Origin: Macrostomum hystrix | Lineage: Eukaryota > Animalia > Platyhelminthes | DNA: 64,000 bases | Assembly (NCBI GenBank): GCA_950097015.1 | Contig: CATNEN010000001.1 | Location: 10,726,001 to 10,790,000, forward strand | Direction of reading: 5' to 3' | Shown here: piece after piece, positions 346-56,676 of the stretch | How positions within the stretch are numbered: the stretch's first letter is position 1 | Layout of the letters: the number at the start of each line of letters is the position of its first letter | The notes under the pieces: model-generated | Seen by the model: the letters and a program-made list of their open reading frames with translations, nothing else | Told to the model about the DNA's origin: nothing | The model's database searches: none | Translations under genes and position numbers: made by a program

Positions 346-2460
346 TATCAGATAGTTTACGTCGTTCAGACGACGGCCAACGCCTGACTGCTCTAAAATC
401 ATTACAGTTATACGCTCACACAAGTAAAATATAATAATCTGAGAGTAGTAACATAGTTTTTTATAGACGGACATACAAACGAGGACTGCATTACATTCTA
501 CATACTGAAATACGTTAAACGGAATGTTATACAATGACATACGATTATGCAGAATAGTCGCACTTACTATACTTAAGCTGTAGCATGTAAGCGCATGAAG
601 AGCGCAACTCTTCTATTGGCATGTCACCGGTAGTACCGCTGCTGCGAGAGAACGCATACTAGAAAGAGACCAAACGGTAAATAACGATTTAACTCGCGTT
701 CAACTTGGTATTCGCATGTGGGCTAAAGCGCTTAAAGATACCTACTGAAGCGAAATTCGTCCGCTCTGCGGCTCCGCTAACATCAGGGGTTTCAAGGATG
801 ACTATTTTGCGATCTGGCAGACGAAGTACAAATGAGGCACTGCCTCATTTTGCTGAAAATGCTGATTCTTGCCTTCATTAATCTATTGTTCCTAAAGCGA
901 GCTAAACTACCTTCGAAATCTGGGCACTTCACGCTCTGAAGGTCTGAACCCAGATCGAATCGATTCTTTCATTTGCACGTTTGATGGAAAGCAGTGCAGC
1001 CTTTCCAGTCTGAATCTATCAAGCTCAATTCTTTCGCTCGCGACTTCAAGCGGCAGGGATTTGGTACGAAGTATCTAAAGGACAAAGTTCAAATGCAAAA
1101 TGACAATATACAACACTTTCTACTTCCTAAATTTCTATATTTCTATATTTCTATCTATATTGGTCATGCAATCTCATGCAATCTCATCTCAGCATGTCCA
1201 TCTCACTCTCAGCCTCTGATCTCTCAAAATAGTCAACAGCAGCACTTGCACATGCTATTGCAGGGCTACGACTAGGAGTAGGACTAGCAACATCATTGTT
1301 TTTCCAAGGCAGATGTTGTGCTTTGTTTTTAGATGGTCAACTAATCCTTTGTGGAACCACCTTTGGCAGAAAAAGATTGCTTACAGATCTTGCATCTTGC
1401 TGAATTAGGATGTAGCTTATCAAACTACTTCCAACAGGGAGAAGTCAGCTTGTTATAAGCAGGCATTGAAGATGCTGAAAATGATGGCAATTGGCAAAGA
1501 TGCTGGCTGTGACTACATACAGCACTCAAATTTGCTTTAAAAAACCCAACCTCCACCTATGAATATCCTAAAGTTCAGAACGTTTGTTTACAATGTACTA
1601 AATCCAAATAATACTAAATCTCAGAGATTTATCTCATATATGATATGAATATGACACTATTTTCAAAATAATATAATGAGGATACACTTCAAAAAATATT
1701 TTTATACCAAACATTAAATGTTAACTTAACATTAGTTTATGGTCTTTGAATCCCTAGTTAGTAGTACAAAATATTATAAAATTATATTATACTACATTTT
1801 TCAAAAGGTTATAAGTGTATCATATATGTATAACAATATTAAAGTAAGGATTGAGAATGATTATTTTATAAATCTATATGAATTTTATTAAAAAATAACT
1901 AGCCTTTATTTGCTAATAGACTACTAGTACTACTAAAGAATAGGCCTAGCCTATGTAAACTATAAACTTATAAAGTTGTAATTATACACTTAAAATATTT
2001 TTACAATTAAATTATAAGTGAAAAAACAAGTCTACTGCATCTGAAATCTGCATGTGTCTACATTCTACAATCTACATTAACAAGTCTACAACTACGCTCG
2101 TACGTCTACAATTGCTATTAATTATTGTTATTGCTCTCCATTGCTCGCTTGCTAAGTTGCTACTAGCTGAGTTGCTAAGCTGCTACTTTCTATAATCTAT
2201 AGTCTATCTCTATACCATGCTTGTCTTTTCTATAAACTCACTAAGTCACTAGAACTAGAAGTAGTAATTTAGTATAGTAAAATAGAAATCATAGAATTGT
2301 ATTCATACATTTAAGAATTAATATAATCTTGCTGGAAATAGAATTGGACTTTGTATTTTGGATTGATTGAATCTGAATGAATGAGCTCGACTGGACTGGA
2401 TGAATCGAAAATCAGATTCCGTAATAAAACTTTTACATAAAAAGTTCAAATATAATAATT

Positions 2461-4960
2461 CACCCGACGGCAGAGGTCTAGACGGGGAAAAAGCTTAAAA
2501 TATCTCCCGTCTAGCCTGGAAAAAGCTCGTCTGTTAAGCTTTCTTCTATGGACTAGACCGGAAAAAGCTCATCTGTTTTAACTAACTAGTACTTCAATGC
2601 AGCAAGGCTAGAAATTAAGCGATTTATTGTGTTTTGTTTAACCTGTTAAAAATCCTAAATTTTGAAATACGACTTTGTTTTAAAGTGCTGTTTGAATAAA
2701 AACGAATTTAAAATTCATCAGCACGGGGCTGGCACTGGTATATGATTCATTATCAGGTTTGATGTTACTTGCAGAATTTACAAGCTAGTCAGTTGCTTTA
2801 AAGCTATACATAGATGTGACTTACATTGTATGGTGAAGTTGAAGATTGCTTTTTGTCGAATATGAATTTTCTTGTAATGTAACAGTAAAGCCACTATATT
2901 ACTACTTGCTAGATTAGAAAGTTGTAGTAACAGGTTACAGGAATTAACTATTAACTCAGGTTCTTTAGCTTTATGGGCTTTTTCTGATGTGAAACTTTTG
3001 TTAAGTAGAAATCAAGCTAGGCTATGCCTAGGCACGATATATTTTCTAAACATTTGATCTATTTATCCAATAATGTGCTGATAAAAACTGCATAGTTAGA
3101 ACCTTTTGTTATTATTAATGCTAGTTTATATATATAAATGCTAGCTGTCCAGTCCTCTTAGTTACCCAGCCCTCTAAGCATTTGATCTATTTATCCAATA
3201 ATGGGCTGATAAATACTGCTTAGTTATAGCTTTTTTGTTATTATATATGCTAGTTAGTAGTTTAATATAGGCACTCATTTGCATGGAGAAAATTTATTGA
3301 ATTGTTCTAAAATACCAAATAGCTTTTTATGTTATGATCTAGTCATATTTGTTAATTTAGAGACATTATCTATTTTAGTATTAAAATACATTTTGCAATA
3401 TAAAGTATAACATATATATACCATATATATCCTGTCCTCCTAGCTACCCAGCCCTCTAGTCCTAGATATCCTGCCCCTAGCTGTCCAGTCCTAGCTAACA
3501 ATCTTGCCCCCCTAGCTGGCCAGTCCTAGCTAGCTATCCTGCCCCCTAGATGTCCAGTCCTAGCTAGCTATCCTGCCCCCCCCTAGCTAGCTATCCTGCC
3601 CCCCCTAGCTAGCTATCCTGCCCCCTAGCTGTCCAGTCCTAGCTTGCTTTCCTGCCCACTTAGCTTGCCAGTCCTAGCTAGCAGTCTTGCCCCCCCTAGC
3701 TGGCCAGTCCTAGCTAGCTATCCTGCCCCCTAGCTGTCCAGTCCTAGCTAGCAGTCTTGCCCCCCCCTAGCTGTCCAGTCCTAGCTAGCAATCTTGTCCC
3801 CCCTAGCTGGCCAGTCCTAGCTAGCTATCCTGCCCCCTAGCTGTCCAGTCCTAGCTAGCAGTCTTGCCCCCCTAGCTGTCCAGTCCTAGCTAGCAATCTT
3901 GTCCCCCCTAGCTGGCCAGTCCTAGCTAGCTATCCTGCCACCCCTAGCTAGCTATCCTGCCCCCTAGCTGTCCAGTCCTAGCTAGCCATTTTGCCCCCCC
4001 CCCCCTAGCTGGCCAGTCCTAGCTAGCTATCCTGCCCCCCTAGCTAGCTATCCTGCCCCCTAGCTGTCCAGTCCTAGCTAGCCATCTTGCCCCCCCCCCC
4101 CTAGCTGGCCAGTCCTAGCTCGCTGTCCTGCCCCCTAGCTAGCTATCCTGCCCCCCTAGCTGTCCAGTCCTAGCTAGCCATCTTGCCCCCCCCCCTAGCT
4201 GGCCAGTCCTAGCTAGCTATCCTGCCCCCCCCTAGCTAGCTATCCTGCCCCCCCTAGCTAGCTATCCTGCCCCCTAGCTGTCCAGTCCTAGCTTGCTTTC
4301 CTGCCCACTTAGCTTGCCAGTCCTAGCTAGCAGTCTTGCCCCCCCTAGCTGGCCAGTCCTAGCTAGCTATCCTGCCCCCTAGCTGTCCAGTCCTAGCTAG
4401 CAGTCTTGCCCCCCCCTAGCTGTCCAGTCCTAGCTAGCAATCTTGTCCCCCCTAGCTGGCCAGTCCTAGCTAGCTATCCTGCCCCCTAGCTGTCCAGTCC
4501 TAGCTAGCAGTCTTGCCCCCCTAGCTGTCCAGTCCTAGCTAGCAATCTTGTCCCCCCTAGCTGGCCAGTCCTAGCTAGCTATCCTGCCACCCCTAGCTAG
4601 CTATCCTGCCCCCTAGCTGTCCAGTCCTAGCTAGCCATTTTGCCCCCCCCCCCTAGCTGGCCAGTCCTAGCTAGCTATCCTGCCCCCCTAGCTAGCTATC
4701 CTGCCCCCTAGCTGTCCAGTCCTAGCTAGCCATCTTGCCCCCCCCCCTAGCTGGCCAGTCCTAGCTCGCTGTCCTGCCCCCTAGCTAGCTATCCTGCCCC
4801 CCTAGCTGTCCAGTCCTAGCTAGCCATCTTGCCCCCCCCCCTAGCTGGCCAGTCCTAGCTAGCTATCCTGCCCCCCTAGCTAGCTATCCTGCCCCCCCCC
4901 CTAGCTAGCTATCCTGCCCCCCTAGCTATCCTTTCCCCATAGCTGTCTAGTCCTACGCCA
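2461..4960 (+). repeat. Left terminal inverted repeat (~2.5 kb including minisatellite)
   Basis: 2461-~3110 is nearly identical to the reverse complement of ~24085-24711 (about 3 mismatches seen). Homology continues through ~3430 into the CTAG minisatellite. Confidence 0.9.
3430..4950 (+). repeat. CTAG/C-run minisatellite (CCTAGCTAGCTATCCTGCCCCCTAGCTGTCCAGT variants)
   Basis: Tandem units of ~20-36 bp. A diagnostic variant AGCTTGCTTTCCTGCCCACTT recurs at 3641 and 4290, a ~649-bp higher-order duplication. Confidence 0.95.
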
Positions 4961-5165
4961 CCTTCCTTTCCTCCCAGCTACGCTGCCTCCTTGCTCTCTA
5001 GTCCTTTCAGCTATCCTGCCAAGTACCCTGTACTTCATTCGATTCCTTATCCTTTTGCTTTCTTATCTTATTTATCAGTCCTAGCTCTGCAGTACCTTTT
5101 AATTCTGCAACCTGTTTTGTTATTAGTATCTGTAACCTGCTGGTTTTTCGTTTTAACTTTTGCAG

Positions 5166-8100
5166 ATGGTTCACACTGCGTATTCATCCTTTTTGCAGGA
5201 AAATAAACGATTCGGTAAGATAGTATTCTTCATTGTATGTGCTTTCTTAATCCTTTTTAATTGTGTAAGTAATATAAGAATAAGTTCATGCATTTTTTTC
5301 ATTTTTTTCTTGAAACGGATGTGTATATGTACATGTTTAATGATGTGATTTTAGTTATTTAGCATATCCATGAAGCTGACAAGTCGTTTATACTGTAGCT
5401 AATTGCTCAATTTTTTTAATTGGTTGTTATAAAGCAAAATCCCGAATGTACAGTAAAGGTAATAAAGGTGCATGATATATTTATACTGTTACTTTTCTAT
5501 TTTCAGATCAACAGAAGGAGTTGGCAGCCAGATTCAAGTCTCTCTGTGGCTCGGAAAGACAGCGGCTCGCTGCAAAGGCAGCACAGACTGCCCCCAAGCT
5601 CTCAACGATAGAGAAAATGGTAAACTGCATTTTTTTGCTTGGCGGACTCACTTTTTATCGCTACCACACCTTTTTAATTTGCTATCACACCTATCGAAAA
5701 GTTTAGCTTCGCAAGGACCCATCGTGGAGATTTTTTTTAATTGTGGCCCGTCAGGATAAGCCACCATACTTTTCATGCAGCCCAGAAGATGTAGAACTTC
5801 ATCCATTGGCGCGGCAAGTGTCAGAGGTATGAGCCACGTCTCATTGGTTAATGACCTACGCTTACTCTTGATTAATTAATAATGCTCTGTTTAAAACTAT
5901 TTTTAGAAGCTTATCGGCCATTTGAAAAATCCGCCTAAAAAAAGCATAATGGGTTTGAGAAAGGCCCTTCGCAAGCAGGCTCAGGATGCATATAGTAAGT
6001 TATTTTTCTCTAGCTGGTTTTTGGGCATAGACAGATCCTAGAGAAGATCAAATTTATTTTAGCGTTCAATGTGGCTATGAATAATCTTATTGGTAATTAA
6101 GATGTGTCAGCAGTAAGATTGTAATAGGAAACTACTTTTATTAGGGATTATATTATAGTTAAATAGACAAAACGTGACAAAAGTTGCCACATTTTTTGGA
6201 TTGTTAACATTTTAGATGCAGCAGGGTTTCATGGCCGCGTCCAATGGAAGAAGTTGCCTATAATTGGCCAATTCGAACCATGGTTATGCGATCCTACATG
6301 GATGACAATGGAGTCTATTAAAGCGGCACTTTCGAGCCCTATCGTATTCCATCCATCAAGATCAGGTCTTAGTTTTAGTTCTTACTTCTTACTTAGCTAA
6401 ACTTACTTACTTACTAACTAAACTAAACTAAACTAAACTAAACTAAACTAACTAATAAACTAAACTTACTTCTTAGTTTAGCGCACAATATGAAGTTATT
6501 TCGTTATTTACACTGCTTTACTTTACCGATTTATACGATAAAGGTGATTTTAATTAGTGCAGAGAAGTTTGAGTGCTTTGAAATATCGTCTAGCTGTTTC
6601 CGTTTATTCACTGACTGATTTATCCTTATTTTAAAATCATGACTCAATTTAAACTAGCCGTTTTGTTTAATTTCTTTATTTCTCTCCAGTTCCAATCGAC
6701 GTAAGCGAACCCGAAGGCAACGAAGACCATATCGACCAATCAGAAGACCTTGACTGGCCGAGCTCCGGCGGTCCGCACTTCGGTGTGCCGAGCTCCAGTG
6801 GGCCTAGAGGCGGTGGGCCTAGTGGCGGCGGGCCGAACTCCAGCGGGCCTAGAAGCGGTGGGCCGAACTCCAGCGGGCCTAGAAGCGGTGGGCCTAGTGG
6901 CGGCGGGCCGAACTCCAGCGGGCCTAGAGGCGGTGGGCCTAGTGGCAGCGGGCCGAACTCCAGCGGGCCTAGAAGCGGTGGGCCGAACTCCAGCGGGCCT
7001 AGAAGCGGCGGGCCGAACTCCAGCGGGCCTAGAAGCGGCGGGCCGAACTCCAGCGGGCCTAGAGGCGGTGGGCCTAGTGGCGTCGGGCCGAACTCCAGCG
7101 GGCCTAGAGGCGGCGGGCCGAACTCCAGCGGGCCTAGAGGCGGCGGGCCGAACTCCAGCGGGCCTAGAAGCGGTGGGCCTAGTGGCGGCGGGCCGAACTC
7201 CAGCGGGCCTAGAAGCGGTGGGCCTAGTGGCGGCGGGCCGAACTCCAGCGGGCCTAGAGGCGGTGGGCCTAGTGGCGGCGGGCCGAACTCCAGCGGGCCT
7301 AGAAGCTTGACTTACTTGACTTATCTGCAGGGCGGTCCGACGGACGCAGCGGGGAGGCGGGAGTCGCCCATTCCACTAATCCCTGAAAGACCCGCAATCG
7401 GCCGATGGCGCGGGGCCAGTCAGGGAGGTCCGTGTTCGGTCCTTCCTGCAGCTTGTTCCTCGCTGGGGAAGAAAGAGGCTCGTCTGGTAGCCCTTAGGAA
7501 CCGGACGAGCCGCGGGATGTTCTCGGATCTGCAAACATCGTCCATTGATGGGTTTGGTCCGAGGTGATTGAGCCTCTCTCTGGTGAAGAAAGGGCAGTGG
7601 CAGACGAAGTGCAGGGCATCCTCGTCCTCAAGGTTGCAGAAAGGGCACAGCTCACTCCGGAGGTCTCCACGGAGGAAACAGTGTCTGGCGTAGCAGCCAT
7701 GGCCCGTGAGGGTCATGGTGAGGGCCCGGATGTCCTTCCGGGTCTGGTTCAGAAGGACCTTCCGGAGCCGAGCGGATGGCACTGGAACTGCCGCTTTGGA
7801 TTGGCGGCAGTTAGTGGTGCTCCTCCACCGGGTAAGATGGAGGTTGGCGGTCCAATCATTAATCTGACGATAAATGACGGTGCTCGGAATCGGAGCCGGG
7901 GGGGAGGGGCCCGGCGCAGAGCTGGCTCCTCCCTGCTTGGCCAGGTGGTCAGCAAGCTCGTTACCAGGGAAACCGGCGTGCCCTGGTATCCACTGAAGTC
8001 TGACGGTATTCTTACCGGCCAGGTTATTGAGCTGCCGGACACAGTCGGAGACTGTCCGGGAGGTTGTGGTGGTGTGACAGAGGGCTTGCAGAGCGGCCTG

Positions 8101-11100
8101 ACTGTCCGAGTGAAAGATGATAGTCCTGCCTGAGATGTTTTTCTCATTCAACTCCGCAGCGCAGGAGCTGATGGCCAGGACCTCGTTCTGGAAAACGCTC
8201 GAGGATTTTCCAGTGTGTTGGGCGTGTGTGGCGACAACACGTCCGTTGATAAGGATACAGACCCCGAAGCCAGCGGAGCCATCCTTCATGGATCCGTCCG
8301 TGTAGCAGTGGACCTCCTGGGTGTTCCAGTGGTCGCTAACTTGGTCCCTGGTGGGGATGAGAACCTTAAAGCGCTGAAGGAGGTTGAGCGAGCACGGTTC
8401 ACCGTCCGTAAGGACGTTGATTCCGTTGCTCGCACCCAAGTCTCTCAGGCAAAGGTCCGTGTGCGGCAGGAGCTTTCGCTTCGCTGCCGCTCGTTGGGGG
8501 ACGAAGCGCACACCGGCATCAAGGAGACGCCGGGCGGTTTTTGCCGCCTCCCCGCGGATAAAGATATCGAGCGGGAGGATGTTCAAGAAGGCGTTGAGGC
8601 CATCGAAGGGGGCGGATGGCGGGGCGCTCATGATCGTCCGACATGCGCGACCTTGCACTCTCCGAAGAGTCTCATGGCAGGTCTTAAGCTGAAGGGCACT
8701 AGCCCAGATCAGTCCGGCGTACGAGACAGCCGGCCTGACCATAGCAGTGTAGATCCACCATAGACGTTTGGGGGTGAGACCCCACGTGTTGCCCACCGCC
8801 CTGCGCAGCTGCGCCAGGATCGCAAAGGCCTTTTTGGCTTTGGCATGGACATGAGGAGTCCAGCTGAGCCTGTGATCGAGCGTTATGCCCAGGCATTTGG
8901 TTTGCTTCTGGAAGGTGATGTCCTTTCCATACAGCTGCAGGGGGCGAATATGCCATTTGTTTTTGCTGGTGAACATGATCGCCGCTGTCTTAGACTCGGA
9001 GAGCTTCAGACCGCAGCGAGTTGCCCATCTTTCGGCGTTGTTGATAAAGTTTTGCAGAAGGTCTCGGAGGGCCTCTGGTACCGGGCCAGATGCCACTGCC
9101 GTAACATCATCCGCATAGCCGACCTTTAGGATGGGGTCTGGCTGAGAGTCTCGTAAGAGCTCGTCGATAACCATGTTCCAGAGAACTGGTGAGAGGACGC
9201 CGCCTTGTGGGCAACCTTTGCAGACAGTGACCGTCCGCTGGTGTCCAAGAAGGTGTGCCGTAGCAGTGCGGTGGCGGACCATGTACATGATCCACCTCCT
9301 AAGATGCGAATGCGTGTGCCGCATACGTAGGGCCCTGTCAAACGCCTCGAAGAGAACGTTGTCGAAGGCCCCGTCAATATCCAGGAAGATGCTCAGGGCA
9401 AAGCCGTTCCCGAGGACGGCCTTTTCCAGAGCGTCCACCAGAGCGTGGAGAGCGCTTTCGGTGGAACGTCCCGACCGAAAGGCGTGTTGATTGCCGCTTA
9501 GTGGCATATTTTTCAGCTCCACAGAGAGGAGGCGCCAGAGCACCAATCTCTCCATCAGTTTGACCATGGTGGAGGTAAGGCTAATTGGCCGAAACGATTT
9601 AATGGAATGGTAGTCCGGGCGGCCTGGCTTGGGGATAAAAACCACCCTCGCCTCGGTCCATGCCTTCGGAACATACCCAAGCACAATGCAGGCCTTAAGG
9701 AGCTTGCAAAGATTTGTGAGGAAGCCATGGCATTTTACCGCCTCGCGGATGAAGGCTGGTATAATGCCGTCCGGCCCCGGGGATTTGAAGGGTTTGAAAG
9801 ACTGGGCTGCCTTGGTAACCCGGTCTTCAGTAATGATGGACGTCGCAAGGATATGACCTCCCTCGGTGTGATCCGGGGGGTCTGTCCCTGCTGGCACGCT
9901 GGGGAAAAAGGCTGTGAGCATAGTGTCGAGCGTTTCCCCAGGGTTCTCGGTGGGTCGGCCATCGGCCTTCCTCACCGTCGAAAGCTTGGACATTTTGTCC
10001 AGCGTGAGGGCTTTGACAATTCTGGAGGTGGGGCGAGTGCCCTCAAGCTCCTCACAGTATTGCCGCCACTTGCTGTTTTTGGCGTTTCTGACTTCCTTCT
10101 TGAAGCTATGGATGGCTTCGAGATACGCAGCCTGATCAGCCGGGTTTTTTGTCTTCGTGGCCCTGCGGTGCAGCCGCTTCGCCGTTCGACGGAGCTCGCC
10201 GAGCTGCGGATTCCACCATGGGGCCGAAGTTTTGCCTCTGTAAGCTTTGAGGGGGCAGGAGGCCTCGAAGGCGGTGGTCAGCGAGTTGGTGAGAAACTCA
10301 GCTAGCTCATCCGCTTCATCGCAGGTGTTGGCGGGGGGGCTTAGGTTTCGTTGGGTTCCTTCGAGGTTATGCCTGAAGGCTTCCCAATCGGTATTCCTAG
10401 CGTTCCTTTTCCAAATGATCTGGTTAGTGCAGCGTGCACCCGCCAGTTGGAAAGAGATGTATTTGTGATCGGAGAGGGAGGTCTCCGGCAGAACCTGCCA
10501 CTCCCTAAGGCTCTGGTAAAGCCCAGGTGTGGCTAGAGTGGCGTCGATGACCTCAGACCACCGGCCATTGTCAAAGGTCGGGGTGCTCCCTGTGTTGCAG
10601 AACTCCAGGGACGTGGTTAAGATGTAGGCAAGGAGGTCCTCGCCTCTCGAGTTAATGTCAGAGCTCCCCCAGTGGGTGTGGTGGGCGTTAATATCGCCAG
10701 CCACTATGAGCTCATGGTTTTTGGCAGCGCAGGTTTCAATCAGAGAGATCAGCTCCTCATGGACTGCCGGCCTGTCGCCCGGTAAGTAAACCGAGGCGAT
10801 TAGGACGGTTTTTCCTGGGAGGATGTTCTCCGTCTGGATGACACAGGTGTCCCGATCAGAAAGGTCGGGTCTGTGCCAGGCGTTGAGGGAGTCTCTCACG
10901 AGGATGCACGCCCTGGGAGTTTGGTTCTCCCAGTGACGGCTGTTGTAGAGGCAGTGATACCCATTGGGTACATTTTGAGGCTTTATGAGTCCACGGCTCC
11001 TGGACGAGGATGAGACCCGGCATGTTGAGCTCGACATAGCGCATCAGATTGACGGATGCAGCTATGCAGTGTTGCAGGTTAACCTGCAGGCAGGTGATCC

Positions 11101-14100: not shown

Positions 14101-14713
14101 GCCGAACTCCAGCGGGCCTAGAGGCGGCGGGCCGAACTCCAGCGGGCCTAGAGGCGGCGGGCCGAACTCCAGCGGGCCTAGAAGCGGTGGGCCTAGTGGC
14201 GGCGGGCCGAACTCCAGCGGGCCTAGAAGCGGTGGGCCTAGTGGCGGCGGGCCGAACTCCAGCGGGCCTAGAGGCGGTGGGCCTAGTGGCGGCGGGCCGA
14301 ACTCCAGCGGGCCTAGAAGCGGTGGGCCGAACTCCAGCGGGCCTAGAAGCGGCGGGCCGAACTCCAGCGGGCCTAGAAGCGGCGGGCCGAACTCCAGCGG
14401 GCCTAGAGGCGGTGGGCCTAGTGGCGTCGGGCCGAACTCCAGCGGGCCTAGAGGCGGCGGGCCGAACTCCAGCGGGCCTAGAGGCGGCGGGCCGAACTCC
14501 AGCGGGCCTAGAAGCGGCGGGCCGAACTCCAGCGGGCCTGAAAGCGGTGGGCCGAACTCCGGTGGACCAGGAAGCGGCGGGCCTAGAGGCGGCGGGCCGA
14601 ACTCCAGCGGGCCTAGAAGCGGCGGGCCTGAAAGCGGTGGGCCGACAAGGGATGGGGATTTAGCTAATAATGTTTTGTATGAAGATGGAGAACTTTTTGT
14701 TCTTGCTGATTAA
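5166..14713 (+). CDS. Transposon accessory gene: HMG-box-like N-terminus plus Gly/Ser/Pro/Arg repeat tail (~664 aa without the LINE), interrupted by LINE
   Basis: Phase-consistent GT-AG exons 5166-5214, 5507-5619, 5907-5994, 6216-6365, 6690-7306 + 13736-14713. Translation: [43 protein letters not shown]...[14 protein letters not shown]...PIVF...([10 protein letters not shown])n...[12 protein letters not shown]. 'TAYSSF.QE.K...LAARFKSL...E+Q' resembles HMG-box helices. Confidence 0.75.
6785..7306 (+). repeat. Coding minisatellite (30/45-bp units), left part
   Basis: GGGCCGAACTCCAGCGGGCCTAGAAGCGGC units encoding [10 protein letters not shown] / GPSGG. Confidence 0.95.
7420..11116 (-). CDS. LINE ORF2: AP endonuclease, reverse transcriptase, RNase H, zinc knuckle (one frameshift near 10990)
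   Basis: N-terminal LQVNLQH..LVQEPW lies in ORF 10856..11116. ORF 7420..11037 has [46 protein letters not shown] and [14 protein letters not shown]. The ATG at 11116 overlaps the ORF1 stop (ATGA). Confidence 0.92.
11113..12701 (-). CDS. LINE ORF1 (gag-like), frameshifted at the G10 run 12397-12406
   Basis: Likely starts [12 protein letters not shown] at 12701 (in ORF 11964..13307) and continues in the 408-aa ORF 11113..12339 after a homopolymer slip. Lies directly upstream of ORF2. Confidence 0.7.
12906..13440 (-). repeat. ~5.5 x 96-bp tandem repeat in LINE 5' UTR
   Basis: Unit starts at 12906, 13002, 13098, 13194, 13291 and ~13388. Confidence 0.95.
13726..14645 (+). repeat. Coding minisatellite, right part
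   Basis: Same units as 6785-7306, in frame with them once the LINE and one TSD are removed. Confidence 0.95.
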
Positions 14714-17001
14714 TTATGCTTCTTAACATGGCGCGCAGCACAAAGTTATTTCGCAATATATATTTTACTGCAAAGTAGTTTGAGTGCTTTGAAACATGGT
14801 CTTGCTGTTTTGTATTAGATAATTTGTGATTTGATGATTTGTACGAGCTATGTAGAACTTTTTGTTTTTACTGATTAATTTTGCTCGTTTCGGGTGGGTG
14901 CGGTGGGTGGTAATTGAGGGTGGGTGCCGGGTCCCCTCAGTCCATGGACTGAACAGCCGTTCGCAGCCTTCAGGTGCGCCGCGCAGTAGCTGCCAGCTGT
15001 GCTGTCGGATGCACATGTGGCAAGATTGGGACAGGCGTAATCGATTATTATTAAAAATATTATTATCATCGTAGTGCGAGTGCACACAAAGTCTTGCACT
15101 TTTGAATCCACCACCAAAAATTAAAACGGCAATATTGTTTTCGTGACCTAGACAAGGCACGCAATTTATGTTATCAATGTTTGAACAGAATGTGCAGCTG
15201 AAGAGAATTAAAAAAAATGCTTCCTGTTTTCCACTTCTTTCAAGTACAAACTAAAAAACTGTCGAGGCAGATTGAGAGGCGGCGGATAGCAGTACATGTG
15301 CCACGGATGGTCGTATGCGACCGGCCAAATTGTCGACCAACTGCACGGATCGTAAACGAGTATACTGGGCAGCGGCAGCTTTAATAATCCAACTCTCCCT
15401 CACCCCAACCAAAGGCTTAGCACCTTGCGCGTTGTGCGAATTGCGCAAGTTACAATACTGCGGAGAGGGAAATGGATCACTAGTTGGGATGAGTGAGTTA
15501 TTCAGGGTGGACACGCGCAGGTTTCAATTGCGCAAGTTGTGATAGGAGGGAGAAATTGCTCACTTGCTCATGTGAACACTTTTCAATGTCCAATAGTGTA
15601 ACACTGACAATATCAAAGCGTAGCTTTTAACAGATATTAAGGGATAACTCTGATATCATAGCCTAGCACTGGTAGTAGGTTAGTTTTAGGGTAGATTGTA
15701 CAGATTCGATTTTAGGATATTGGGATTTAGGGAAGTGCTTAGAAGATAAAAACATTTACGTGGGGAAGTTTTAGTGACAATCGTATACTAAAATAGTTGC
15801 TTACAAAAATAGTAGGGGCATTAAAACAGTAAACGCTTATTCTTCCTTTTAATAATATACTTTATCGATACTCACGGCTGCATCTTATTCGTCCGTCCGT
15901 TATTTATAAGATCGGAGGTTTTGTCTGCACATCTGTTCTCGAGATGTCGGTTTTCGAGCAGTCAGATTTTTTTACATTTTCCATGAAATTAGGTAAAGAG
16001 AAGGTAAATTCCTAAGGTGAGTTCTGTACCGCTGGCTTAGCCGACCAACACCTAGAATCATGCTGATGATGCGTTCCTTGATACACAAACAACCATGAGC
16101 TGTAAACTTTGGCACGAGGACCATTAGTAAAAGGGATGTTACACTACTCATAAGCATAAAAGTATATGAAAAAATGAAATGCCGCCTTCGGCAAAACCGG
16201 GCGACCAGACTTGGGGTAAACCCCGAACCCGGAACCCGACCCGGACCCAAAAACCGACCCGACCCCGAACTTTACCCGACTATCTCCTGGACTTGGAGTG
16301 ATGGCTAAGAAGAGTACTTGTCTTAAAATACCGCCTTTTCCTTTTTCTACTTTTCTATTGTTAACTCTTCTCCCCCACTATCACTACACTACTCGACTCC
16401 TCGGACAGTCGTACTCTTCACTTTACCCTCTACTCCTGAAAGCCTCAGGCAGGTTTGTATGTTAAAAATTCAGATTTAAGTTGCTGACGTGGGATTACAT
16501 AGCTAACGAAGTAAAAAGAAAACATAATTAAAGACCATTTAAAGACATAATGCAGAATTAGGATGAGCTGTTTAGACTTTAGAAATATGTATATCTATAT
16601 GTATGTATTATAATTCAAGGCCTAAAATTCGTAGAATGATTTATATACATTAGAATGACTAAGGCATCACGATTATTAATTCATTAGTGCAGTGCAAATT
16701 ACGCCAGTTCAGTTTAAGAAAAAAATATTTTTGAAATGGCGCGATTTCGAAAGACGCTTTATCACGTAATAAGGCAATACTTAAATAAAACTGATAATAA
16801 TAAAAACACCGGAAACCTGAACCCGGTACCAAAACCCGACCCGAAAACCCGAACCCGAACACCCAACCCCGAACCTCGAACCCGACCCGGACATCTACAC
16901 CCGAACCCGGTACCAAAACCAAGAGCAAGAAAACTGAGAAACTTCAATTCTAGACTTCATTTGCTTTCAAAGACTATAGTCTGAAGCTACATGTATACTG
17001 C

Positions 17002-17370
17002 ATACGAGGGGGTTAAAAAGTTTTGCCGTTGACTACTTTGAGAAGCCACTTCTACTCTTCGAGAAGAAGCTAAAAGTTTGGGGAATCAAAGGTTCGGATC
17101 CATGCACCCATGAAAGCTCGTCGAGAGGCATTTCTAGAAGGCAATGCGCATGACACTTGTTCTGCGACCGCACTGGACCCCTTACGATCGAGCTTATGCA
17201 GGAGCCTGACACAAGCATCAATTCTGATCGCTACATGTACATGTACTGAAGGATGCATGACATTCAAAACAAGCGTCACAGAGACACCAAGCCCTTCATT
17301 CTCCATCACGATAATGCAATAACACACACTGCTCAGAAGACCACTGAGGCTGTCACAAGGCTCAAACCTT
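17002..17370 (+). mobile_element. Mariner remnant (TIR-like start and transposase fragment)
   Basis: TACGAGGGGGTTAAAAAGTTTTG mariner-type terminus. FILHHDNAITHTAQKT matches the mariner HDNARPH motif. Confidence 0.65.
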
Positions 17371-19042
17371 CTGCCACACCCGCCATACTCGGCCAATTAG
17401 CTTTGCTCGACTGGCTCACTACAGTCTGCAGCAGCAAGCACCAGGACGCAGGTGTCGAGCGGCGCTTCGTGCCGCCCTTCCTGCGTTCCTCCCGTACATG
17501 TACTTTTGTGTCTCAACCCCTTGCCCAGTGTATTTGCAATTACCCCCACCAGCCCAATCCGGTTCTCCGGTTTGTCTGGCCCTCGGCTTAGCCAGGCAGG
17601 CCGCTGATTGGCTGCAAACACTTATTTTCTCGACGCTCTAATTCTCTTCTTCGCCTCTCGGCTCTACTGCAGCCTGCCCCAACCCCAACACCCAACTCGG
17701 GGTGGCTAAGCCCCACTCCTCCCCTTCTCACCTCCATGGATGCGAGGCTGGTGCGAGCCAATTTTGCGTCTGCCACCCCCTGGCAATGTCATTGGCTGGA
17801 GGGCGCAGCCCGGCCCCGCCCCTGCTCTGATTCTCTCGCCCCTCCCCGCCACTATTTATTTGTGCGCTCCGCTCGCCATGCCATAACGCGCTCTCGACCG
17901 CCCTACCCTGCTTAATTGCTCCGGAAAACTTGGTTTGACGCGCGGTCTCTTACTCCGACGAATCAAATCGATTACCTAAGATCAGATTTTGACACTTAGA
18001 AGAACCACACAGTGCATTGCGGTGAGCGCAGGCACAGAGCAGAGGATTGCCAATAATACTGAGCAGTCAGCGCGTGCACGACCTGCACTACTAGCCCGAG
18101 ACGCGATTTATGAGCTCCCGGTAAGATTCGACTTTCCGCGTTTATTATTTCACCTGGTTGTTCTCATTGCTCGAGCGTCTTCGGTTATTTACGTTACGTT
18201 CGATGGAGTCCGAGTGGCCGTCTGCTCACTCGACACTTTTATTATCCGTTATTTCGATCATTATTGTCTGCAAAGTGTCCGTACGCCTCCAGGCTTTTGC
18301 TTACCCTAACACTCTGTAGTGCACAAGACCGACTGCAGGTGAGATGGCCAGGCAGATGCTGAGGTTCTGACCGCGCTGACCATTCACAGTCGCATTGGTT
18401 CTGTCCGATTGAGATGTCCAACCCAGCAGAAATTGCAGAAATTGCTTGCAAACTTGCCTAACTAGCATGCAAAAAGGTACGGTATAGTCGAACTCCACAG
18501 CTTAATTACAGTGAATGAGACTAGGCAAATATGCATTTACGTGTCAATTCCGATATTCATGGTAGATCGGCTACTGCTAGTAGTTAAGCAGAATTATGAA
18601 AAAAACGAAGGCGCATTAACACTGCCTTTTAGGGTTTGACATTTGGTTTGTTGTTACTTTTTAGCAAAGTAACTGCGACCATATCCAATCAATTTTCAAA
18701 ATGGACGCGAATTCTCGCTTCTCTCGCCACTGTGGCATAAGAATTGTGCTCAAAGTAACAATTATTATTAACTAAATCGCAGCACTGAAAACAAAAGTAA
18801 TAAAATAGCGCGCTAGTGAGTAGATTCACAAAGTTGTTTTGATGTAAATCCACAGTCAGCAAGAAATACAAGAAATACAATTTTCCGTATTAAGGAAGAT
18901 TGTACTGCAACAATATAAATGGGAACTGTAGGAAGTAATTGTGCACACCAATAACACATCGAAAAAATTTCTTCTGTTGCAGTTAAATGAGTTAGAAAAT
19001 AACAGAAAGAAAAAAACTTTTATCTTGCACGACACCGTAAAA

Positions 19043-22000
19043 TCAATGCATTTGTGCGATCACATCAACGCATTGAAACCGCAGGTCTTCAAGGACATGG
19101 CGACAATGGGAAAGCAAGCCTGTTTTGCCTTGTAACGACTCGATTTCTTGATAGAGCCGTAACTGCAGACGCGAAGCTTCTTCGCGGATCAGATTTTTCT
19201 CCTCACCTATTCGGGAAAATAGAGACGAAGCTTCGATCATGAGAAGACGATACCGTGCAGCAGGTTCAGATAGAGACACGCCGCAGTAGACATCGGCCGT
19301 TGGATTGTAATATGTGGCCAGAGGTTCCCGTGAAAATTGTGGCAGATCCTTGGACCAAATGGCCGCCATTTCGCGCTGAACAACAGACAATCGCGCGATG
19401 TACACCTTGGCGTCGCTTTGTGCACTGCATTGGCGAAGGCTTGCATACAAGCGCAGCCGCTCAACAGCTCCGCACCGAAGGCGCTCTAATGGAGTCAGCG
19501 GAGAGGATTCTTCTTCAACTAAATACTCCTGAAGGTGCAGCTGTCCTCGTAGAAATAGCTGGTGCGGCTCACGATCTGAAAAATATGATTTCATTGCACG
19601 ACTGTTTTATTGCTTTACTCACGCGAGACAACCGCAATTAAGGCAGTGTGTTACCTTCTGGAAGCAATTTCTGCAAGAGACTGGTCAGAGACGCCGAGTG
19701 CCTGCGCAGCAAACGAAGTCTGTTTTGCAGCCATTTCCCTGGAGTGGAGGAAGTTGAAAAAAATTCTTTCAATAAATCGGCGCCCATAAATGATAACCGC
19801 CATCGAATAACTGAATAAATGACATCCATTTTTAATACATTTGCTGTCAAAAGTTGAGGATATATACATTTTCAACCTTTAAACTGAGAAAATATGCGAC
19901 AGAGAACAGAGAGATAGCATTAAAGTAAAAGGACAAAAAATCAAACACTGACCACATTCCAGTAAGTGACTGACATTCGAACGCCAAATGTAATGAGCTA
20001 GAGTGTAAGTGCGGTGGTCAATGCGCATCTCCTTTAACTGTGGGCCGTATGGTCGGAACGATGAATTCAACCTCTCACAGTGTTCGCCATCGGTTAGGCC
20101 GCAGCCTTCAACGAATCTAACTGAGTTTTTTAGCTGAAATATGAAATAATAGGAATGATATGTGGCAAAAAATATAATGTACAATCAAAACTATTTTCTT
20201 TCTTGTTTTGGTACGAACAAATGTAATACGAAATTTATAAATGAGACACAAAATACATACTCGGCAGGATGTCTTGTGAGCGAATGCATGAAAGGCGTTT
20301 ACAGCAGGAACAATGGTTACATATGGATAGTCAGCCGCGATCTGCTGCAATCGACGGAACATCTTGCAGGCAATGTCATAGACAAAGATGACTACCCCAT
20401 TTACGCCACTTGCTTCCAAGAAGTATCGAAGACATTGTTCAGCGTATAAAAGGCGTTCTCCTGGCGATCGGATGTCAGCGCATGAAACTATAATTGAGTG
20501 GCGACAGGAGAGCATGAAGAGTCCGTTAACATCAAGGGCTCTTGAAGAAATTCTCCGAGTGACTGAGCCAGCTTGAAAATTCGAACACGAAGCAGTATCT
20601 TCGCCAGCTTCCTTGGGATCGACATCAACATGAATAAAAGGTGCCGGAAGACGACCATCGAGTGGTGATGGACACAGCTGCTGACCAGCCCGGCGTCTGT
20701 GACGCAAACCCATGCACCCATCTCCTGTGACGATTTTTGTGGACGGCAACGAACCTGGAGTGTTCTGAATAATTTGACGGATCCGCGATTTAAATTTTAC
20801 AACAATTATTGATTCGTGTATACATGCGAATGCTTGCATTTTAGTAAATTTCAACAGTGATCTAATTAAGAGCAGCAATTTAGAAATTAGACACCGTAGC
20901 TGGGGTAGCAAATTTTAGACACAATGTGCACTTCGTCTATCGTCTTTCCTAAGGAAAACCTGCTCAATTTCGAAAAACAGTAGCAAGTTATTACTCACAG
21001 CATCTGGACACAACAAGCAACCGGTCGGCCAAGGAAGCACATCGCGAAGAAGTTGCCTATATCTTTTAAGCACATCGTTTCGACGAAGAGCATCGTATAA
21101 ATGCAGCCATGTCTGGAAACGAAAATGTTTTTCCAATTGTTATCGGCTTTGAGTTTGTTGGTAAAACGCTCTATACTTAACCATATTTATATTTTAAGAT
21201 ACTATCCCATTTTTAGTATATAGGACTAGAAGATACAAGTTTTTTATAACTTACGCGCTGTCGACCCTCAGTGATATTATCAAACGTAAGCAAGCAGCGC
21301 ACAGCTCGTAGAAGTGACATCTTTCCGTCGGATGTGAGACAATCGAGCATATCCAGAAGTCTCTTGTGAATGAATTTGTCGGAACTAACTTTTGTAACAG
21401 GAAAGTAGCCCGCAATAAGCATAGCATCGTTAATAGAACATTCCGCACAAAGATGAACTGACACAAAGATGCGATCTAAAATGATATTGCCCCAGAATGT
21501 AAATACGTAAAACAATGTTAATACGGGTAGCACCATCGCAATACAAAGCAAATGTTAAAAATTACGTACGACCAAGATGGTCGTATACATTAGCAGACGT
21601 GCTACTATGTAAATCCTCTCGGGAATTAACACAGCAATGAATGACAGGCCGCTCAGCAGGAGTAGAGTCTTGGTACATCTCTCCCTATAATGAGTTTGAA
21701 GAGTAAACGAAAGTCACATCCACGACATAAGAAGATGCACTTTCATATGAAGTTATGAACAGTCAACTTACATTCCACTCGGTAAATTTGTGCACCAGAA
21801 AGGTGCCATGCGTATCTTTCATACAATCCGAGCAGAATTTGCTGGCGCATGTAGTACAATATACGAAACCATCATTCATGCAGCGGCAGCACGGCTGTAG
21901 AATAAATTGCTTTAGACAAGCAGACGACTGCTGCTCAATAACTGGTTCTTCTCGCTCCCAGTCCTGTAGAGGCTGCTGCAACTTTGGTGATGCTGCCACG

Positions 22001-22197
22001 GAATCTACGACGTCCCAGTCCCTTTCTGCATGATCTGATACATGATCTGCTACAGAATGCTGAGAAGCTGCGGATTCCTGACTGCTTTGAGTAGTTTGCC
22101 GGTTAAAGTTGGCTCTAGCGACATTATAGGGCAGAAAGAGTGAACCACGGCCGCGGCGCCGCGATACTCGGATGCCAAGATTTACTGAACGAGGAAA
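19043..22197 (-). CDS. KDZ transposase (Kyakuja/Dileera-like), 8 exons, open, >=724 aa, first coding exon not located
   Basis: Phase-consistent exons 22197-21772, 21684-21573, 21475-21255, 21112-20999, 20764-20261, 20133-19953, 19738-19655, 19575-19043. Motifs: N-terminal Cys cluster CCRC..CTTC..CSDC..H..H, GCLLCP, TGDGC, CSNFQAG, GLFMLSCRH, GER..Y, YDIACK, FHAFAH..SC, GCGLTDGEHCER. Confidence 0.9.
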
Positions 22198-22254
22198 CTG
22201 AAATAAAATAAAGCATAAGAAAACTACAGTAAGGAAAAAGGAACAAAGTAGTGC

Positions 22255-22572
22255 TACAGCAGGGCAGGGGCTGGTGGTGGGGCAGGGGCAGGACTACTGC
22301 AGGGTTTGGGCAGGGGATGGGACTGGGCAGGGGCAGGGGGTTTGGGGCAGGGGCAGGGACAGGGGGTTGGGGCAGGGGCAGGGGGTTGGGGCAGGGGCAG
22401 GGACAGGGGGTTGGGGCAGGGGCAGGGACAGGGGGTCGGGGCTGGAGCAGGGGCAGCGGCTGAGGCTGGGTCTAGGGCAGGGGTAGGGCATCGGTAGAGG
22501 CAAGGGGTGGGGTAGGGGCCAGACAAGGGCAGTGCGAAAGTTGGACAGGGGCAGGGGCAGGGGCAGAGCAGG
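22255..22572 (+). repeat. G-rich (GGGGCA/GGGGGTT) repeat upstream of the transposase
   Basis: Dense GGGG runs. The ORFs here are low-complexity artefacts. Confidence 0.85.
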
Positions 22573-22917
22573 GTCCGTGTCATATAAAGGGAACATAATA
22601 AATGACTTCGTTAAATCCAGCTTTATAGGCCACAGCTTGTAGTATATAAATATAACCTTCTAGCTAGTGGTTGGTATAGCTACCCTGGTAAGGTTGGCAG
22701 GTTGCTCATAACTGGAGATTTATCTTAATTTAAGTAATTAAATGAAATATGAATTGTATCTCATTTGTCATATAATAGTTTAGGAAATCAAATAGATATA
22801 GCCTTATTTAATCACTTCGAAATAGTGCCTCGGTTAGCAATATAAAATCATAAACCAAGTTTAATAAATTATTCTTTATAATAAATTATAAAGAAAAAAA
22901 GTATTCTTGTATAAATA

Positions 22918-24711
22918 CTGGACTGGACTGGATAGCTAGCTAGGACTAGAAAGCTAGGGAGGCAAGATAGGACTAGACAGCTAGTGGGGGGGCAGGATAG
23001 CTAGCTAGGACTGGACAGCTAGGGGGGCAGAAAAGCTAGCTAGGAATGGACAGCTAGGGGGCAGGATAGCTATCTAGGGGGGGCAGGATAGCTATCTAGG
23101 GGGGGCAGGATAGCTAGCTAGGGGGGCAGGATAGCTAGCTAGGGGGGCAGGATAGCTAGCTAAGGGGGGCAGGATAGCTAGCTAGGACTGGCCACCTAGG
23201 GGGGTGGCAAGATTTCTAGCTAGGACTGGACAGCTATGGGGCAGGATAGCTAGCTAGGACTGGACAGCTAGGGGGGCAGGATAGCTAGCTAGGACTAGGC
23301 AGTTAGGGGGGCACTGGGCACAATAGCTAGCTAGGACTGGACAGCTAGGGGGCAGGATAGCTAGCTAGGACTGGACAGCTAGGGGGCAGGATTGCTAGCT
23401 AGGGGGGGCAAGATTGCTAGCTAGGACTGGACAGCTAGTGGGCAGGATAGCTAGCTAGGGGGGCCTGGATAGCTAGCTAGGACTGGCCAGCTAGGGGGGG
23501 GCAAGATTTCTAGCAAGGACTGGACAGCTAGTGGGCAGGATAGCTAGCTAGGGGTGGCAGGATAGCTAGCTAGGACTAGGCAGTTAGGGGGGCACTGGGC
23601 ACAATAGCTAGCTAGGACTGGACAGCTAGGGGGCAGGATAGCTAGCTAGGACTGGACAGCTAGGGGCCAGGATAGCTAACTAGGACTGGCCAGCTAGGGG
23701 GGCAAGATTGCTAGCTAGGACTGGACAGCTAGGGGGCAGGATAGCTAGTTAGGACTAGACAGCTAGGGGGGCAAGATTGCTAGCTAGGACTAGACAGCTA
23801 GGGGCAGGATATCTAGGAGGACTAGAGGGCTGGGTAGCGAGGAGGACTGGATAAATATAGTATATATATATGTTATACTTTATATTGTAAAATGTATTTA
23901 ATACTAATATAGATAATGTCTCTAAATTAACAAATATGACTAGATCATAACATAAAAAGCTATTTGGTAGTTTAGAACAATTCAATAAATTTTCTTCATG
24001 CAAATGAGTGCCATATAATTTTTTATATAACTACTAACTAGCATTTATAATAACAAAAAAGCTATAACTAAACAGTATTTATATAATTTATCAGCACATT
24101 ATTGGATAAATAGATCAAATGTTTAGAAAATATATCATGCCTAGGCATAGCCTAGCTTGATTTCTACTTAACAAAAGTTTCACATCAGAAAAAGCCCATA
24201 AAGCTGAAGAACCCGAGTTAATAGTTAATTCCTGTAACCTGTTACTACAACTTTCTAATCTAGCAAGTAGTAATATAGTGGCTTTACTGTTACATTACAA
24301 GAAAATTCATATTCGACAAAAAGCAATCTTCAACTTCACCATACAATGTAAGTCACATCTATGTATAGCTTTAAAGCAACTGACTAGCTTGTAAATTCTG
24401 CAAGTAACATCAAACCTGATAATGAATCATATACCAGTGCCAGCCCCGTGCTGATGAATTTTAAATTCGTTTTTATTCAAACAGCACTTTAAAACAAAGT
24501 CGTATTTCAAAATTTAGGATTTTTAACAGGTTAAACAAAACACAATAAATCGCTTAATTTCTAGCCTTGCTGCATTGAAGTACTAGTTAGTTAAAACAGA
24601 TGAGCTTTTTCCGGTCTAGTCCATAGAAGAAAGCTTAACAGACGAGCTTTTTCCAGGCTAGACGGGAGATATTTTAAGCTTTTTCCCCGTCTAGACCTCT
24701 GCCGTCGGGTG
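22918..24711 (-). repeat. Right terminal inverted repeat (~1.8 kb, shorter minisatellite 22920-23850)
   Basis: Reverse complement of the left TIR, including the same CTAG minisatellite. Confidence 0.9.
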
Positions 24712-25437
24712 AATAATTGCATATGCAATACTTTCGTACTTTTTAATTGTAGACTTAGTCCAATAAATATTCGTCTATGAAAGAAAATGAAAGAAAATAA
24801 ATGAGCAATCATTTAAGTGCTTAAAAACAGATCTACTATAGTCTATAATTCTTTCTTTCATATATTTCGTTTTACTAATACTAAAGAGAGACGTTTAAAA
24901 AACTTCTATCCGGGGATCCCTGGACAAAACCCCGGACCTTCATTCGGGGTCGCCGGGGGGCCGTCCCCGGGGTTGGCATTATGCCACATGGTATTCAATT
25001 TGGACATTGGTTCAAATTAAATGCCTGGCTTATAATACTGATTGAAAATGGGCTCAAATGGCATAACCAAATTTAGGTAATTATGCCAAATTGGCCCAGT
25101 GAAAAATTCTCAGGTCCAAATGACCTATACTTTAAATGTTTAGCTATATAACTCCAATATTAGGCTTAGTATTATTAGGCATACAGTTACATGTATTTCT
25201 AAATACTACTAGTAGGCTAGGCTAGTACAAAACAAAACATTTAGCAAAATTTAGCTAGTCTCTAAATAATTTTATATAAACATCAATAAAAACTTATGTC
25301 CCTTTATCTATATTAGTATCAATAACTATACATTTATAAATATAGAACTACAAAAGTCATTATGCCTTATGCACATAGTTTTTATGTTATAAATAATATC
25401 AATATACATTGAGGACCAAATGAATATACCAAATGAA

Positions 25438-49000: not shown

Positions 49001-49399
49001 GGACGCCATTACGTAAACGAACTTCTTCATGCAGCAGGTTAAGTTGAGCAGGTCGCAGTGCATGAAAAGCTTATTTAGAACTTTTATTCGGCCTAAAATA
49101 ATTACGATTTGATTCTCAGTTTGCATTAAAGAAAAGGCAGATTAAAGGCTTAGAATCGAGAATCACCTTGAAAAGATCCTGTGAGCTTGTAATTTTGTGC
49201 CACAAACAAATTCCAAATAGACTTTTTCGCCCACGCATTGCAGAGAAAATGATGATTGTACTGAAAATTTATGGAAGTTTAGCTTCGGAAATTGAATATA
49301 AAAAGTTTAAGATGGTTCTAACTTCTAATGTAGAAATTATATTGACTTTCTAATAAGGTAACTTAGGTACCACAAAAACATAAGGTTCGTGGGAGATAA

Positions 49400-53630: not shown

Positions 53631-53639
53631 GCAAGAGGG

Positions 53640-56185: not shown

Positions 56186-56676
56186 GGGCAAAAGCAGTTT
56201 TCCAAAGCCAGTTTTGTTAAAAGTGATACTGATTATCACTGATATTGATGATATCACTGATATCAGTGATACTGGTTATAACACTGATAAGAATTGCAGT
56301 GTGTCAAATGTAGATAACTAGATAACTGTGTTAACCCCACTGGCGAGACACATCACAGCTTTTCTCACTGGCTGGCGCAGACCAGTGTACATTGTGAGCC
56401 CTCTGCCCCGGAATGTGGACACACGGGCCTGGAGAGCCCACACGCCAAATCATAGGTTTTTTGATTTAGACCCCTATTTCTTTATCGATTTTTCAGTTTT
56501 ACCCTGCGTCTTAAGATAAGCTCCAATTCAGCCCACTGGATGATAAAAAGCCTGCAAATTAGTTTGGCTAAAGGGCGCCTTATCTGATTCTTCAGACATC
56601 CAAATCCACAAACTTTCATCTTTCAAACCATATCATTCTTTCTCAACTATTTCATTTCGCTTCTCATTTCTCAATC

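Follow-up and report, generated by a model that had tools for sequence, protein, structure and literature searches.

The window analyzed here is a stretch of 64,000 nt from the flatworm Macrostomum hystrix (assembly GCA_950097015.1, contig CATNEN010000001.1, positions 10,726,001 to 10,790,000 of the forward strand), and positions given below without a contig label refer to it. Its left part is occupied by an element of 22,251 bp with terminal inverted repeats (TIRs), a flanking target-site duplication (TSD) and two convergent genes, in the order TIR > gene 2 > < transposase < TIR. A long interspersed nuclear element (LINE) is nested in gene 2; without it, the element measures 15,831 bp, as estimated (about 15.8 kb) in a first-pass annotation made from the letters and their open reading frames (ORFs) alone. 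The locus very probably represents one copy of a very young family of cut-and-paste DNA transposons of the KDZ (Kyakuja-Dileera-Zisupton) superfamily, with a DDE-type transposase, in a Macrostomum-type flatworm. The first-pass claim of a KDZ-class TIR transposon family in an animal is borne out by the Pfam KDZ profile, the TIRs, the TSDs and an empty site. The coordinates of all features are collected in Table 1.

Table 1. Features of the KDZ element (positions in the window, or contig coordinates in the searched genome, G000, for the full copies).
Feature	Position	Strand	Basis or remark
Left TSD AATAATT	2454..2460		Single copy at the C32 empty site
Whole KDZ element	2461..24711		Tips, TIRs, copies, empty site
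Left outer TIR, 625 bp	2461..3085	+	Motifs at 2478-2495, 2511-2527, 2553-2569
Left subterminal tandem arrays, 17-34-bp units, CCTAGCTAGCTATCCTGCCCC-like	3438..4944	+	Mirrored at the right end
Gene 2 exon 0, start codon, 16 codons + 1 base	5166..5214	+	Predicted model; AG acceptor directly before; same length, phase and GTAAG donor in the sister family (MVRNSYTAFLKAQKKF)
Gene 2 exon 1	5507..5619	+	23/37 residues identical to the sister family, AG/GT kept
Gene 2 exon 2	5707..5826	+	28/40 residues identical to the sister family
Gene 2 exon 3	5907..5994	+	Sister-family comparison
Gene 2 exon 4	6216..6365	+	Phases link exon 3 to exon 5
Gene 2 exon 5, first part	6690..7306	+	Enters (GGGCCTAGAGGCGGC)n array, Gly/Pro/Ser/Asn/Arg-rich repeat; cut by the LINE
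Nested LINE	7307..13726	-	ORF2 7420-11037; ORF1 11964-13307
Gene 2 exon 5, second part	13727..14713	+	Rest of the array, conserved C-terminus, stop
Non-coding spacer between both 3' ends, 3.9 kb	14714..18640		Repeat fragments inside
Transposase exon 8	18641..19575	-	RNA contigs; stop 19045-19043, then 3' untranslated region; 3' limit about 18641
Transposase exon 7	19655..19737	-	RNA contigs
Transposase exon 6 (DGEHCER, catalytic E)	19952..20133	-	RNA contigs, Pfam, alignment
Transposase exon 5 (TGDGC and YDIAC, both catalytic D)	20261..20764	-	RNA contigs, Pfam, alignment
Transposase exon 4	20999..21112	-	RNA contigs
Transposase exon 3	21255..21475	-	RNA contigs
Transposase exon 2	21570..21683	-	RNA contigs
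Transposase exon 1, B-box-like finger, spliced-leader acceptor at 22198	21771..22198	-	RNA contigs, Pfam
G-rich (GGGCAG)n array upstream of the trans-splice acceptor, outron/promoter region	22325..22566		Repeat search
Right subterminal tandem arrays	22968..23848	-	Repeat and inverted-repeat searches
Right outer TIR	24087..24711	-	Motifs at 24603-24619, 24645-24661, 24677-24694
Right TSD AATAATT	24712..24718		Single copy at the C32 empty site
Copy in the window	G000:C1:10728461-10750711		TIR pairing
Copy C1b	C1:25892483-25908111		TIR pairing
Copy on C11	C11:187285-202927		TIR pairing
Copy on C11	C11:271262-286947		TIR pairing
Copy C5	C5:5097050-5111900		TIR pairing
Copy C38	C38:24587063-24602369	inverted	TIR pairing

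The element starts with CACCCGAC and finishes with GTCGGGTG, and the heptamer AATAATT is found immediately outside both tips. The outer arms of the TIRs are 625 nt each and differ by 3 mismatches and 0 gaps (99.5% identity); the flanking AATAATT and the near-identical outer TIRs noted at first pass are confirmed. An inverted-repeat search of the window returned somewhat longer arms (652 nt at 98%), owing to chance pairing of the AT-rich flanks. Inward of the outer arms are about 1.2 kb of inverted subterminal tandem arrays with units of 17 to 34 bp, whose mutual identity is about 82% and whose alignment is interrupted by many indels. The TIRs had been described as kilobase-sized, which applies if these degenerate arrays are counted, but not to the outer arms. 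A motif of 17–18 bp, CTAGNCNGG(G)AAAAAGCT, is present three times at each end within the terminal ~110 bp; strict matches to it number 4 in the window, compared with 0.02 expected. The three motifs at each end are candidate transposase-binding sites.

The precise ends of the element are revealed by an empty paralogous site at G000:C32:250373-250379, where both flanks are contiguous around one AATAATT. This site, a check proposed in the first-pass annotation, locates both ends exactly, demonstrates the 7-bp duplication and rules out an extension of the TIR by 3 bp (ATT) into the TSD, a caveat that had been raised. The span originally given for the element, 2454-24718, was correct as to its presence but took in both TSDs. 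The insertion target is itself part of a low-copy repeat (2161-2460 and 24712-25011), with paralogues on contigs C32 (about 89% identical, the empty site) and C34 (about 75%). Across the insertion sites of the family, target preference is limited to a mild A+T bias, with no further consensus.

To find further copies, the genome (220 Mb, 42 contigs) was searched with the left arm. Twelve full-length arms were obtained, which pair into six full elements, each of them flanked by its own perfect 7-bp TSD (AATAATT, AATTTGC, AATTGAT, TTTTTTT, GTGGGGC, and ATTAGGC). As the flanks are unrelated and the perfect TSDs differ, the copies arose by transposition and not by segmental duplication. In the unique interior of 7,451 bp, the six copies are 0–12 substitutions apart, that is, 0–0.16%, and the copies C1b and C38 are identical. 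The identities of whole copies are lower (97.8–99.2%) because the tandem arrays vary in length. Thus, the young age of the family and the consistent 7-bp TSD that had been postulated hold for the six full copies; the TSD length is confirmed by the empty site and by a sister family described below. The impression that the interior of C38 differs from that of the other copies was rejected: C38 is simply inverted, and the impression stemmed from a plus-strand-only BLAST search.

The genome also contains short derivatives resembling miniature inverted-repeat transposable elements (MITEs), of about 315–1,330 bp, which keep only the first ~105–138 bp of each end. The terminal motifs lie in these retained portions. 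Among six MITE-like pairs, three have perfect 7-bp TSDs (TACCCCC, TGTTTTC, and ACGTAAA), two have degraded ones, and one, locus L019 at G000:C1:27000107-27000537, has an odd junction, with a duplicated CACCCGACGGC ahead of the left tip and no 7-bp TSD match.

The transposase is encoded on the minus strand. Two of its core-exon ORFs match the Pfam KDZ profile (PF18758) with 67 bits (E = 2.6e-18) and 38.5 bits (E = 1.3e-9), both above the cut-off of 26.6, and the catalytic D, D and E, assigned at first pass to TGDGC, YDIAC and DGEHCER, align with invariant columns of the relatives. Exon 5 also contains CRH and H..H..C motifs, and exon 1 a weak B-box-like zinc finger (E = 2.4e-4, below the Pfam cut-off). 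The exon structure was derived from four public runs of one study, which contain about a quarter of the words of 14700-24699 and from which contigs were placed on 17500-23499. The contigs of the four runs skip seven intervals, all of which are CT..AC on the plus strand and hence GT..AG on the minus strand, resulting in eight exons.

In all four runs, a contig extends past position 22198 by 23 letters. The reverse complement of this extension, with the following G added, is identical to the final 24 of the 35 nt that make up the spliced leader of Macrostomum lignano, CGGTCTCTTACTGCGAAGACTCAATTTATTGCATG (leader: PMC8629364). The Macrostomum spliced leader ends in a potential start codon (PMC10468722). 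Read from its AUG, an open frame of 725 codons extends to the TGA at 19045-19043; a start at the first internal AUG would yield 619 codons. The 725-codon frame is open in all six copies, with private amino-acid changes in the window copy (T302K and V398L) and in the C5 copy (C286Y). The open, spliced transposase gene of the first-pass annotation was therefore an accurate reading. The gene is transcribed, cis-spliced and trans-spliced to the host leader; the transcripts are assigned to the family, not to the window copy.

A sister family is represented by an 18.2-kb element at G000:C39:4610101-4628264 (L048-L050), whose 12-bp tips are the same (CACCCGACGGCA), whose TSD is CTATAAT and whose two genes are arranged in the same way. 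At the protein level, the transposase exons of the two families are 60–77% identical, and the terminal motifs are partly conserved.

This comparison also defines gene 2 on the plus strand. To judge from a structure kept in the diverged sister family, gene 2 is a real gene of six exons, and the convergent second gene annotated at first pass is upheld: exon lengths, phases and AG/GT sites are identical in the two families, and in exons 1–4 identity extends to 93 of 157 residues (dN, the nonsynonymous divergence, is 0.35; synonymous sites are saturated). A start at the spliced-leader AUG joined to the acceptor of exon 1 was considered and rejected, as it is out of frame; instead, a conserved upstream exon 0 was found. 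In the five LINE-free copies, the (GGGCCTAGAGGCGGC)n array is one plus-strand ORF of 392–512 codons, the differences in length being multiples of the repeat unit; it continues exon 4 in phase from the acceptor 6690 and ends in a conserved C-terminus. The tail of the sister family is made of a different repeat and has a conserved C-terminal peptide, ending in ...YWENGELIVVAI. Gene 2 is thus predicted to encode a protein whose small head is conserved, whose low-complexity tail is hypervariable and which closes with a conserved C-terminal peptide.

Gene 2 is intact in two of the six copies (C1b and C38), carries a frameshift in three (C11a, C11b, and C5) and is interrupted by the LINE in the window copy. 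The frameshift is due to an A-run near 5941 in exon 3, which is one A shorter in C11a, C11b and C5; this shortening represents either an inactivating mutation common to the three or a homopolymer error of the assembly. In the spacer between the two genes, around 14910-15070 and 16220-16920, fragments of two dispersed repeat families are found, 75–87% identical to many loci. They are shared by all six copies and were therefore already present in the master copy. Within the region to which RNA contigs were aligned, 17500-18640 has none.

The nested LINE is a GC-rich block of 6.4 kb that is absent from the other five copies. Its ORF1 (447 aa) and ORF2 (1205 aa) are both open, and ORF2 contains endonuclease, reverse transcriptase and RNase H domains. 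It has a (AAGTCAAGT)-like 3' tail and, in the 5' region, a 96-bp repeat present 5.8 times (12906-13459). More than 600 candidate copies of the LINE family exist in the genome, many of them 99–100% identical, so that the family is probably active now. In the window copy, the gene 2 frame runs into the LINE in antisense orientation and stops at 7567, leaving the conserved C-terminus stranded behind the insertion. The alternative that the LINE hit a harmless non-coding array was rejected, because the array is a long ORF with a conserved C-terminus, the last exon of gene 2. With the LINE inside exon 5, the window copy is not a complete two-gene element. The earlier label of a complete two-gene transposon is therefore right for the ends, the TIRs, the TSD, the open transposase and the layout, but not for gene 2. 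At best, the window copy may supply transposase while relying on other copies for gene 2.

Altogether, the genome holds at least 57 KDZ transposase loci of several families, with protein identities over the core exon of about 72, 58, 38 and 35%. A relative whose core exon is 58% identical is located at G000:C1:10851623, some 61 kb past the end of the window. When the core exon was compared with 1.84 billion representative proteins, 13 matches with E values up to 1e-10 were obtained. The nearest proteins are from M. lignano: PAA67003.1 (47% identity over the core exon), PAA74961.1 (35%) and PAA68011.1 (36%). They share the B-box-like plus KDZ architecture and belong to the same clade, and UniRef names the M. 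lignano relatives as B-box proteins ('B box-type / CxC2 domain-containing'). The three proteins are annotated as hypothetical host proteins, and the papers searched never describe them as transposons with ends and TSDs. In the literature searched, there was no paper on KDZ elements in Macrostomum and none that assigns CxC types to clades.

In a quick maximum-likelihood tree of 95 core domains, which included no labelled Kyakuja, Dileera or Zisupton references, the window transposase falls into a clade of M. lignano proteins and one run-assembly protein, with a support of 95 in the Shimodaira-Hasegawa-like approximate likelihood ratio test (SH-aLRT). This Macrostomum clade sits beside one group of other Metazoa and one of Basidiomycota. 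The relatives match CxC1/CxC2 weakly or clearly. The use of CxC1, CxC2 and CxC3 as labels to distinguish Kyakuja from Dileera was rejected because the matches overlap in all three tree groups. CxC4 and SWIM gave no match in exon 1, in the ORFs over exons 3, 4, 5 and 6 or in the coding portion of exon 8 (exons 2 and 7 were not scanned), nor in the 93 relatives scanned across the three groups.

KDZ transposases are widespread in animals, including nematodes, lancelets, echinoderms and molluscs (PMC9297572), and the protein matches obtained here agree with this. The elements described in detail differ from the flatworm family in several respects. Zisupton of fish likewise belongs to the KDZ superfamily, inhabits animals, has TIRs, encodes its transposase in several exons and was recently active (Bohne et al., 2012, as summarized in PMC12730594 and PMC9297572). 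However, Zisupton, like fungal Dileera, has an 8-bp TSD (PMC12730594), whereas that of the flatworm element is 7 bp in all six copies, at the empty site and in the sister family. Canonical Zisupton transposases also carry CxC4 and SWIM (PMC11343200), which are unmatched in the flatworm exons scanned and in the 93 relatives. The Cryptococcus elements KDZ1 to KDZ3 of the Dileera clade are similar in being giant KDZ elements with long TIRs, TSDs and extra genes. They measure about 9–11 kb, have 236-bp TIRs and an 8-bp TSD, and KDZ1 and KDZ2 were seen moving (PMC11343200, PMC11588098). In addition to the TSD, which for the flatworm element is not that of Dileera, they differ from it by a CxC1 domain, a fungal host and the observed movement; the flatworm element is 15.8 kb long and its mobility is concluded indirectly.

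The closest parallels are found in Kyakuja. Fungal Kyakuja elements have a 7-bp TSD and CA..TG tips and no TIRs (PMC12730594, Kojima, December 2025). The suggestion made at first pass that a 7-bp TSD may be undescribed for such an element is therefore no longer tenable, as it had already been reported together with CA..TG tips. Kyakuja-1_LB and Kyakuja-2_LB from Agaricomycotina share with the flatworm element the KDZ-type transposase, the 7-bp TSD, the 5'-CA..TG-3' ends, the large size and the presence of added genes. The element could thus be an animal member of the strict Kyakuja lineage and not of a separate metazoan KDZ lineage, as the TSD length and the tips, in contrast to the 8 bp of Zisupton and Dileera (PMC12730594), and the lack of SWIM and CxC4 in the exons scanned and in the 93 relatives would suggest. 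However, the fungal members are devoid of TIRs and carry TET/JBP dioxygenase genes, whereas the flatworm element has 625-bp TIRs and inverted subterminal arrays, lacks a TET/JBP gene and has a different conserved companion gene and an animal host. Furthermore, the Macrostomum proteins form their own clade, apart from the other metazoan and the basidiomycete groups, albeit in a tree without labelled references. Membership in the strict Kyakuja lineage is therefore a real possibility, but not the one that we favor.

For the young, mobile KDZ family, the following mechanism can be envisaged. The transposase would bind the three 17–18-bp motifs in each terminal ~110 bp, excise the element and insert it elsewhere via a 7-bp staggered cut. 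Trans-splicing would remove the outron and supply the AUG, so that expression of the transposase would depend on it. Gene 2 may encode an accessory protein, probably DNA- or chromatin-binding, whose product would be supplied in trans or be dispensable, because the gene is intact in only two of the six copies.

Several observations weigh against this picture. Mobility is deduced from the near-identity of the copies and the TSDs, and neither transposition events nor excision footprints or insertion polymorphisms were seen. The four runs are not recorded as RNA and were taken as cDNA on account of the exon joints and the spliced leader. At position 20449, the RNA letter agrees with the other copies and differs from the window copy, so that the transcripts may stem from other copies. 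An unspliced contig agrees in its letters with the C5 copy; together, these two observations indicate that at least two copies are transcribed. No exon piece of the transposase matched a CxC model, the region of the CxC-type cysteine cluster being split over exons 2–4 and the joined protein not having been searched. The model of gene 2 comes from the DNA sequence, the RNA contigs covering the transposase region only, and the defects of gene 2 in four of the six copies weaken the idea that it is required.

The family might therefore be no longer mobile, with copies that go back to one recent burst or duplication and a transposase that is expressed but inactive or nearing domestication. The missing direct evidence of transposition, the broken gene 2 in four of the six copies and the two private amino-acid changes in the window copy would be in line with this. 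However, a duplication does not account for different perfect 7-bp TSDs in unrelated flanks, a divergence of 0–0.16% with a transposase frame open in all six copies leaves little time for decay, and the transposase messenger RNA (mRNA) is properly processed. We thus consider a loss of mobility rather unlikely.

With respect to the second gene, the first-pass annotation had regarded its product as high-mobility-group (HMG)-box-like. By our own reading, exon 0 (16 residues) and 27 residues of exon 1 loosely recall helices 1 to 3 of an HMG box, but the putative helices are separated by far fewer residues than those of HMG boxes. In addition, the exon pieces on the plus strand of 5400-6800 gave no match to HMG_box, GTF2I or any other Pfam family at E values up to 10, the joined protein not having been searched, and exon 4 had no match among the PDB sequences or in the ESM Atlas. 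That gene 2 encodes an HMG-box DNA-binding protein is consequently improbable, and the label was not retained. Finally, the near-identity of the copies is all that speaks for a segmental duplication or an assembly artefact, which is refuted by the sharp identical borders, the TSDs that differ among the six loci (spread over four contigs), the empty site and the occurrence of both orientations, and which we regard as practically impossible.

The layout of the young KDZ family allows a bolder, joint proposal, which we consider speculative and rather doubtful. Macrostomum may possess its own KDZ lineage that operates as a two-component system, composed of a transposase whose start codon comes only from the leader and a co-evolving companion that is needed and is borrowed in trans by copies lacking it. 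The companion would be the small, conserved, DNA-binding-like head with the hypervariable repeat tail and the conserved C-terminal peptide. PIF/Harbinger elements are two-gene transposons that encode a transposase and a Myb-like DNA-binding partner. They resemble the flatworm element as cut-and-paste elements with a second conserved gene; however, their transposase belongs to an unrelated superfamily, so that the resemblance is confined to the layout, and a partner role of gene 2 is hypothetical.

Few KDZ elements are known with complete ends, and nearly all of them are fungal. For the flatworm family, the ends are defined to the base, an empty site is available and the transposase is modelled exon by exon with RNA support, all of this in an animal. 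It extends the type of KDZ element with a 7-bp TSD and CA..TG tips to the Metazoa, here in combination with long TIRs, and its short derivatives define a minimal end of about 105–140 bp. It is also a clean case of a transposon that would rely on the host spliced leader for its start codon, and its companion gene is conserved between families, yet decaying within one. Given the near-identical copies, the processed mRNA and the minimal end, the family may realistically be considered as a candidate vector, active and endogenous, for cut-and-paste transposition in Macrostomum, a model for regeneration and stem cells. If the two-component proposal is true, a currently active element whose ends lie 15 kb apart might be developed into a tool for transgenesis.

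The remainder of the window contains further repeats and mobile-element sequences. On the minus strand of 28382-30521, ORFs with an integrase (H2C2 zinc-binding domain and rve core) and a reverse transcriptase represent part of a long terminal repeat (LTR) retrotransposon. The region 49000-51000 has a very strong excess of G over C and of A over T (GC skew 0.56–0.84); a 250-aa minus-strand ORF at 49527-50279 had no Pfam match. A 327-aa plus-strand ORF at 52676-53659 contains DUF1759, a domain typical of the gag region of Bel/Pao-type retroelements. A 23-bp tandem repeat with 44 copies and 92% matches occupies 55181-56197. It is followed on the plus strand by Helitron-type Rep/helicase ORFs at 57071-61467 (Helitron_like_N, PIF1, Pif1_2B, and UvrD_C_2) and, after these, by a satellite with a 31-bp unit, repeated about 71 times (61772-63986).

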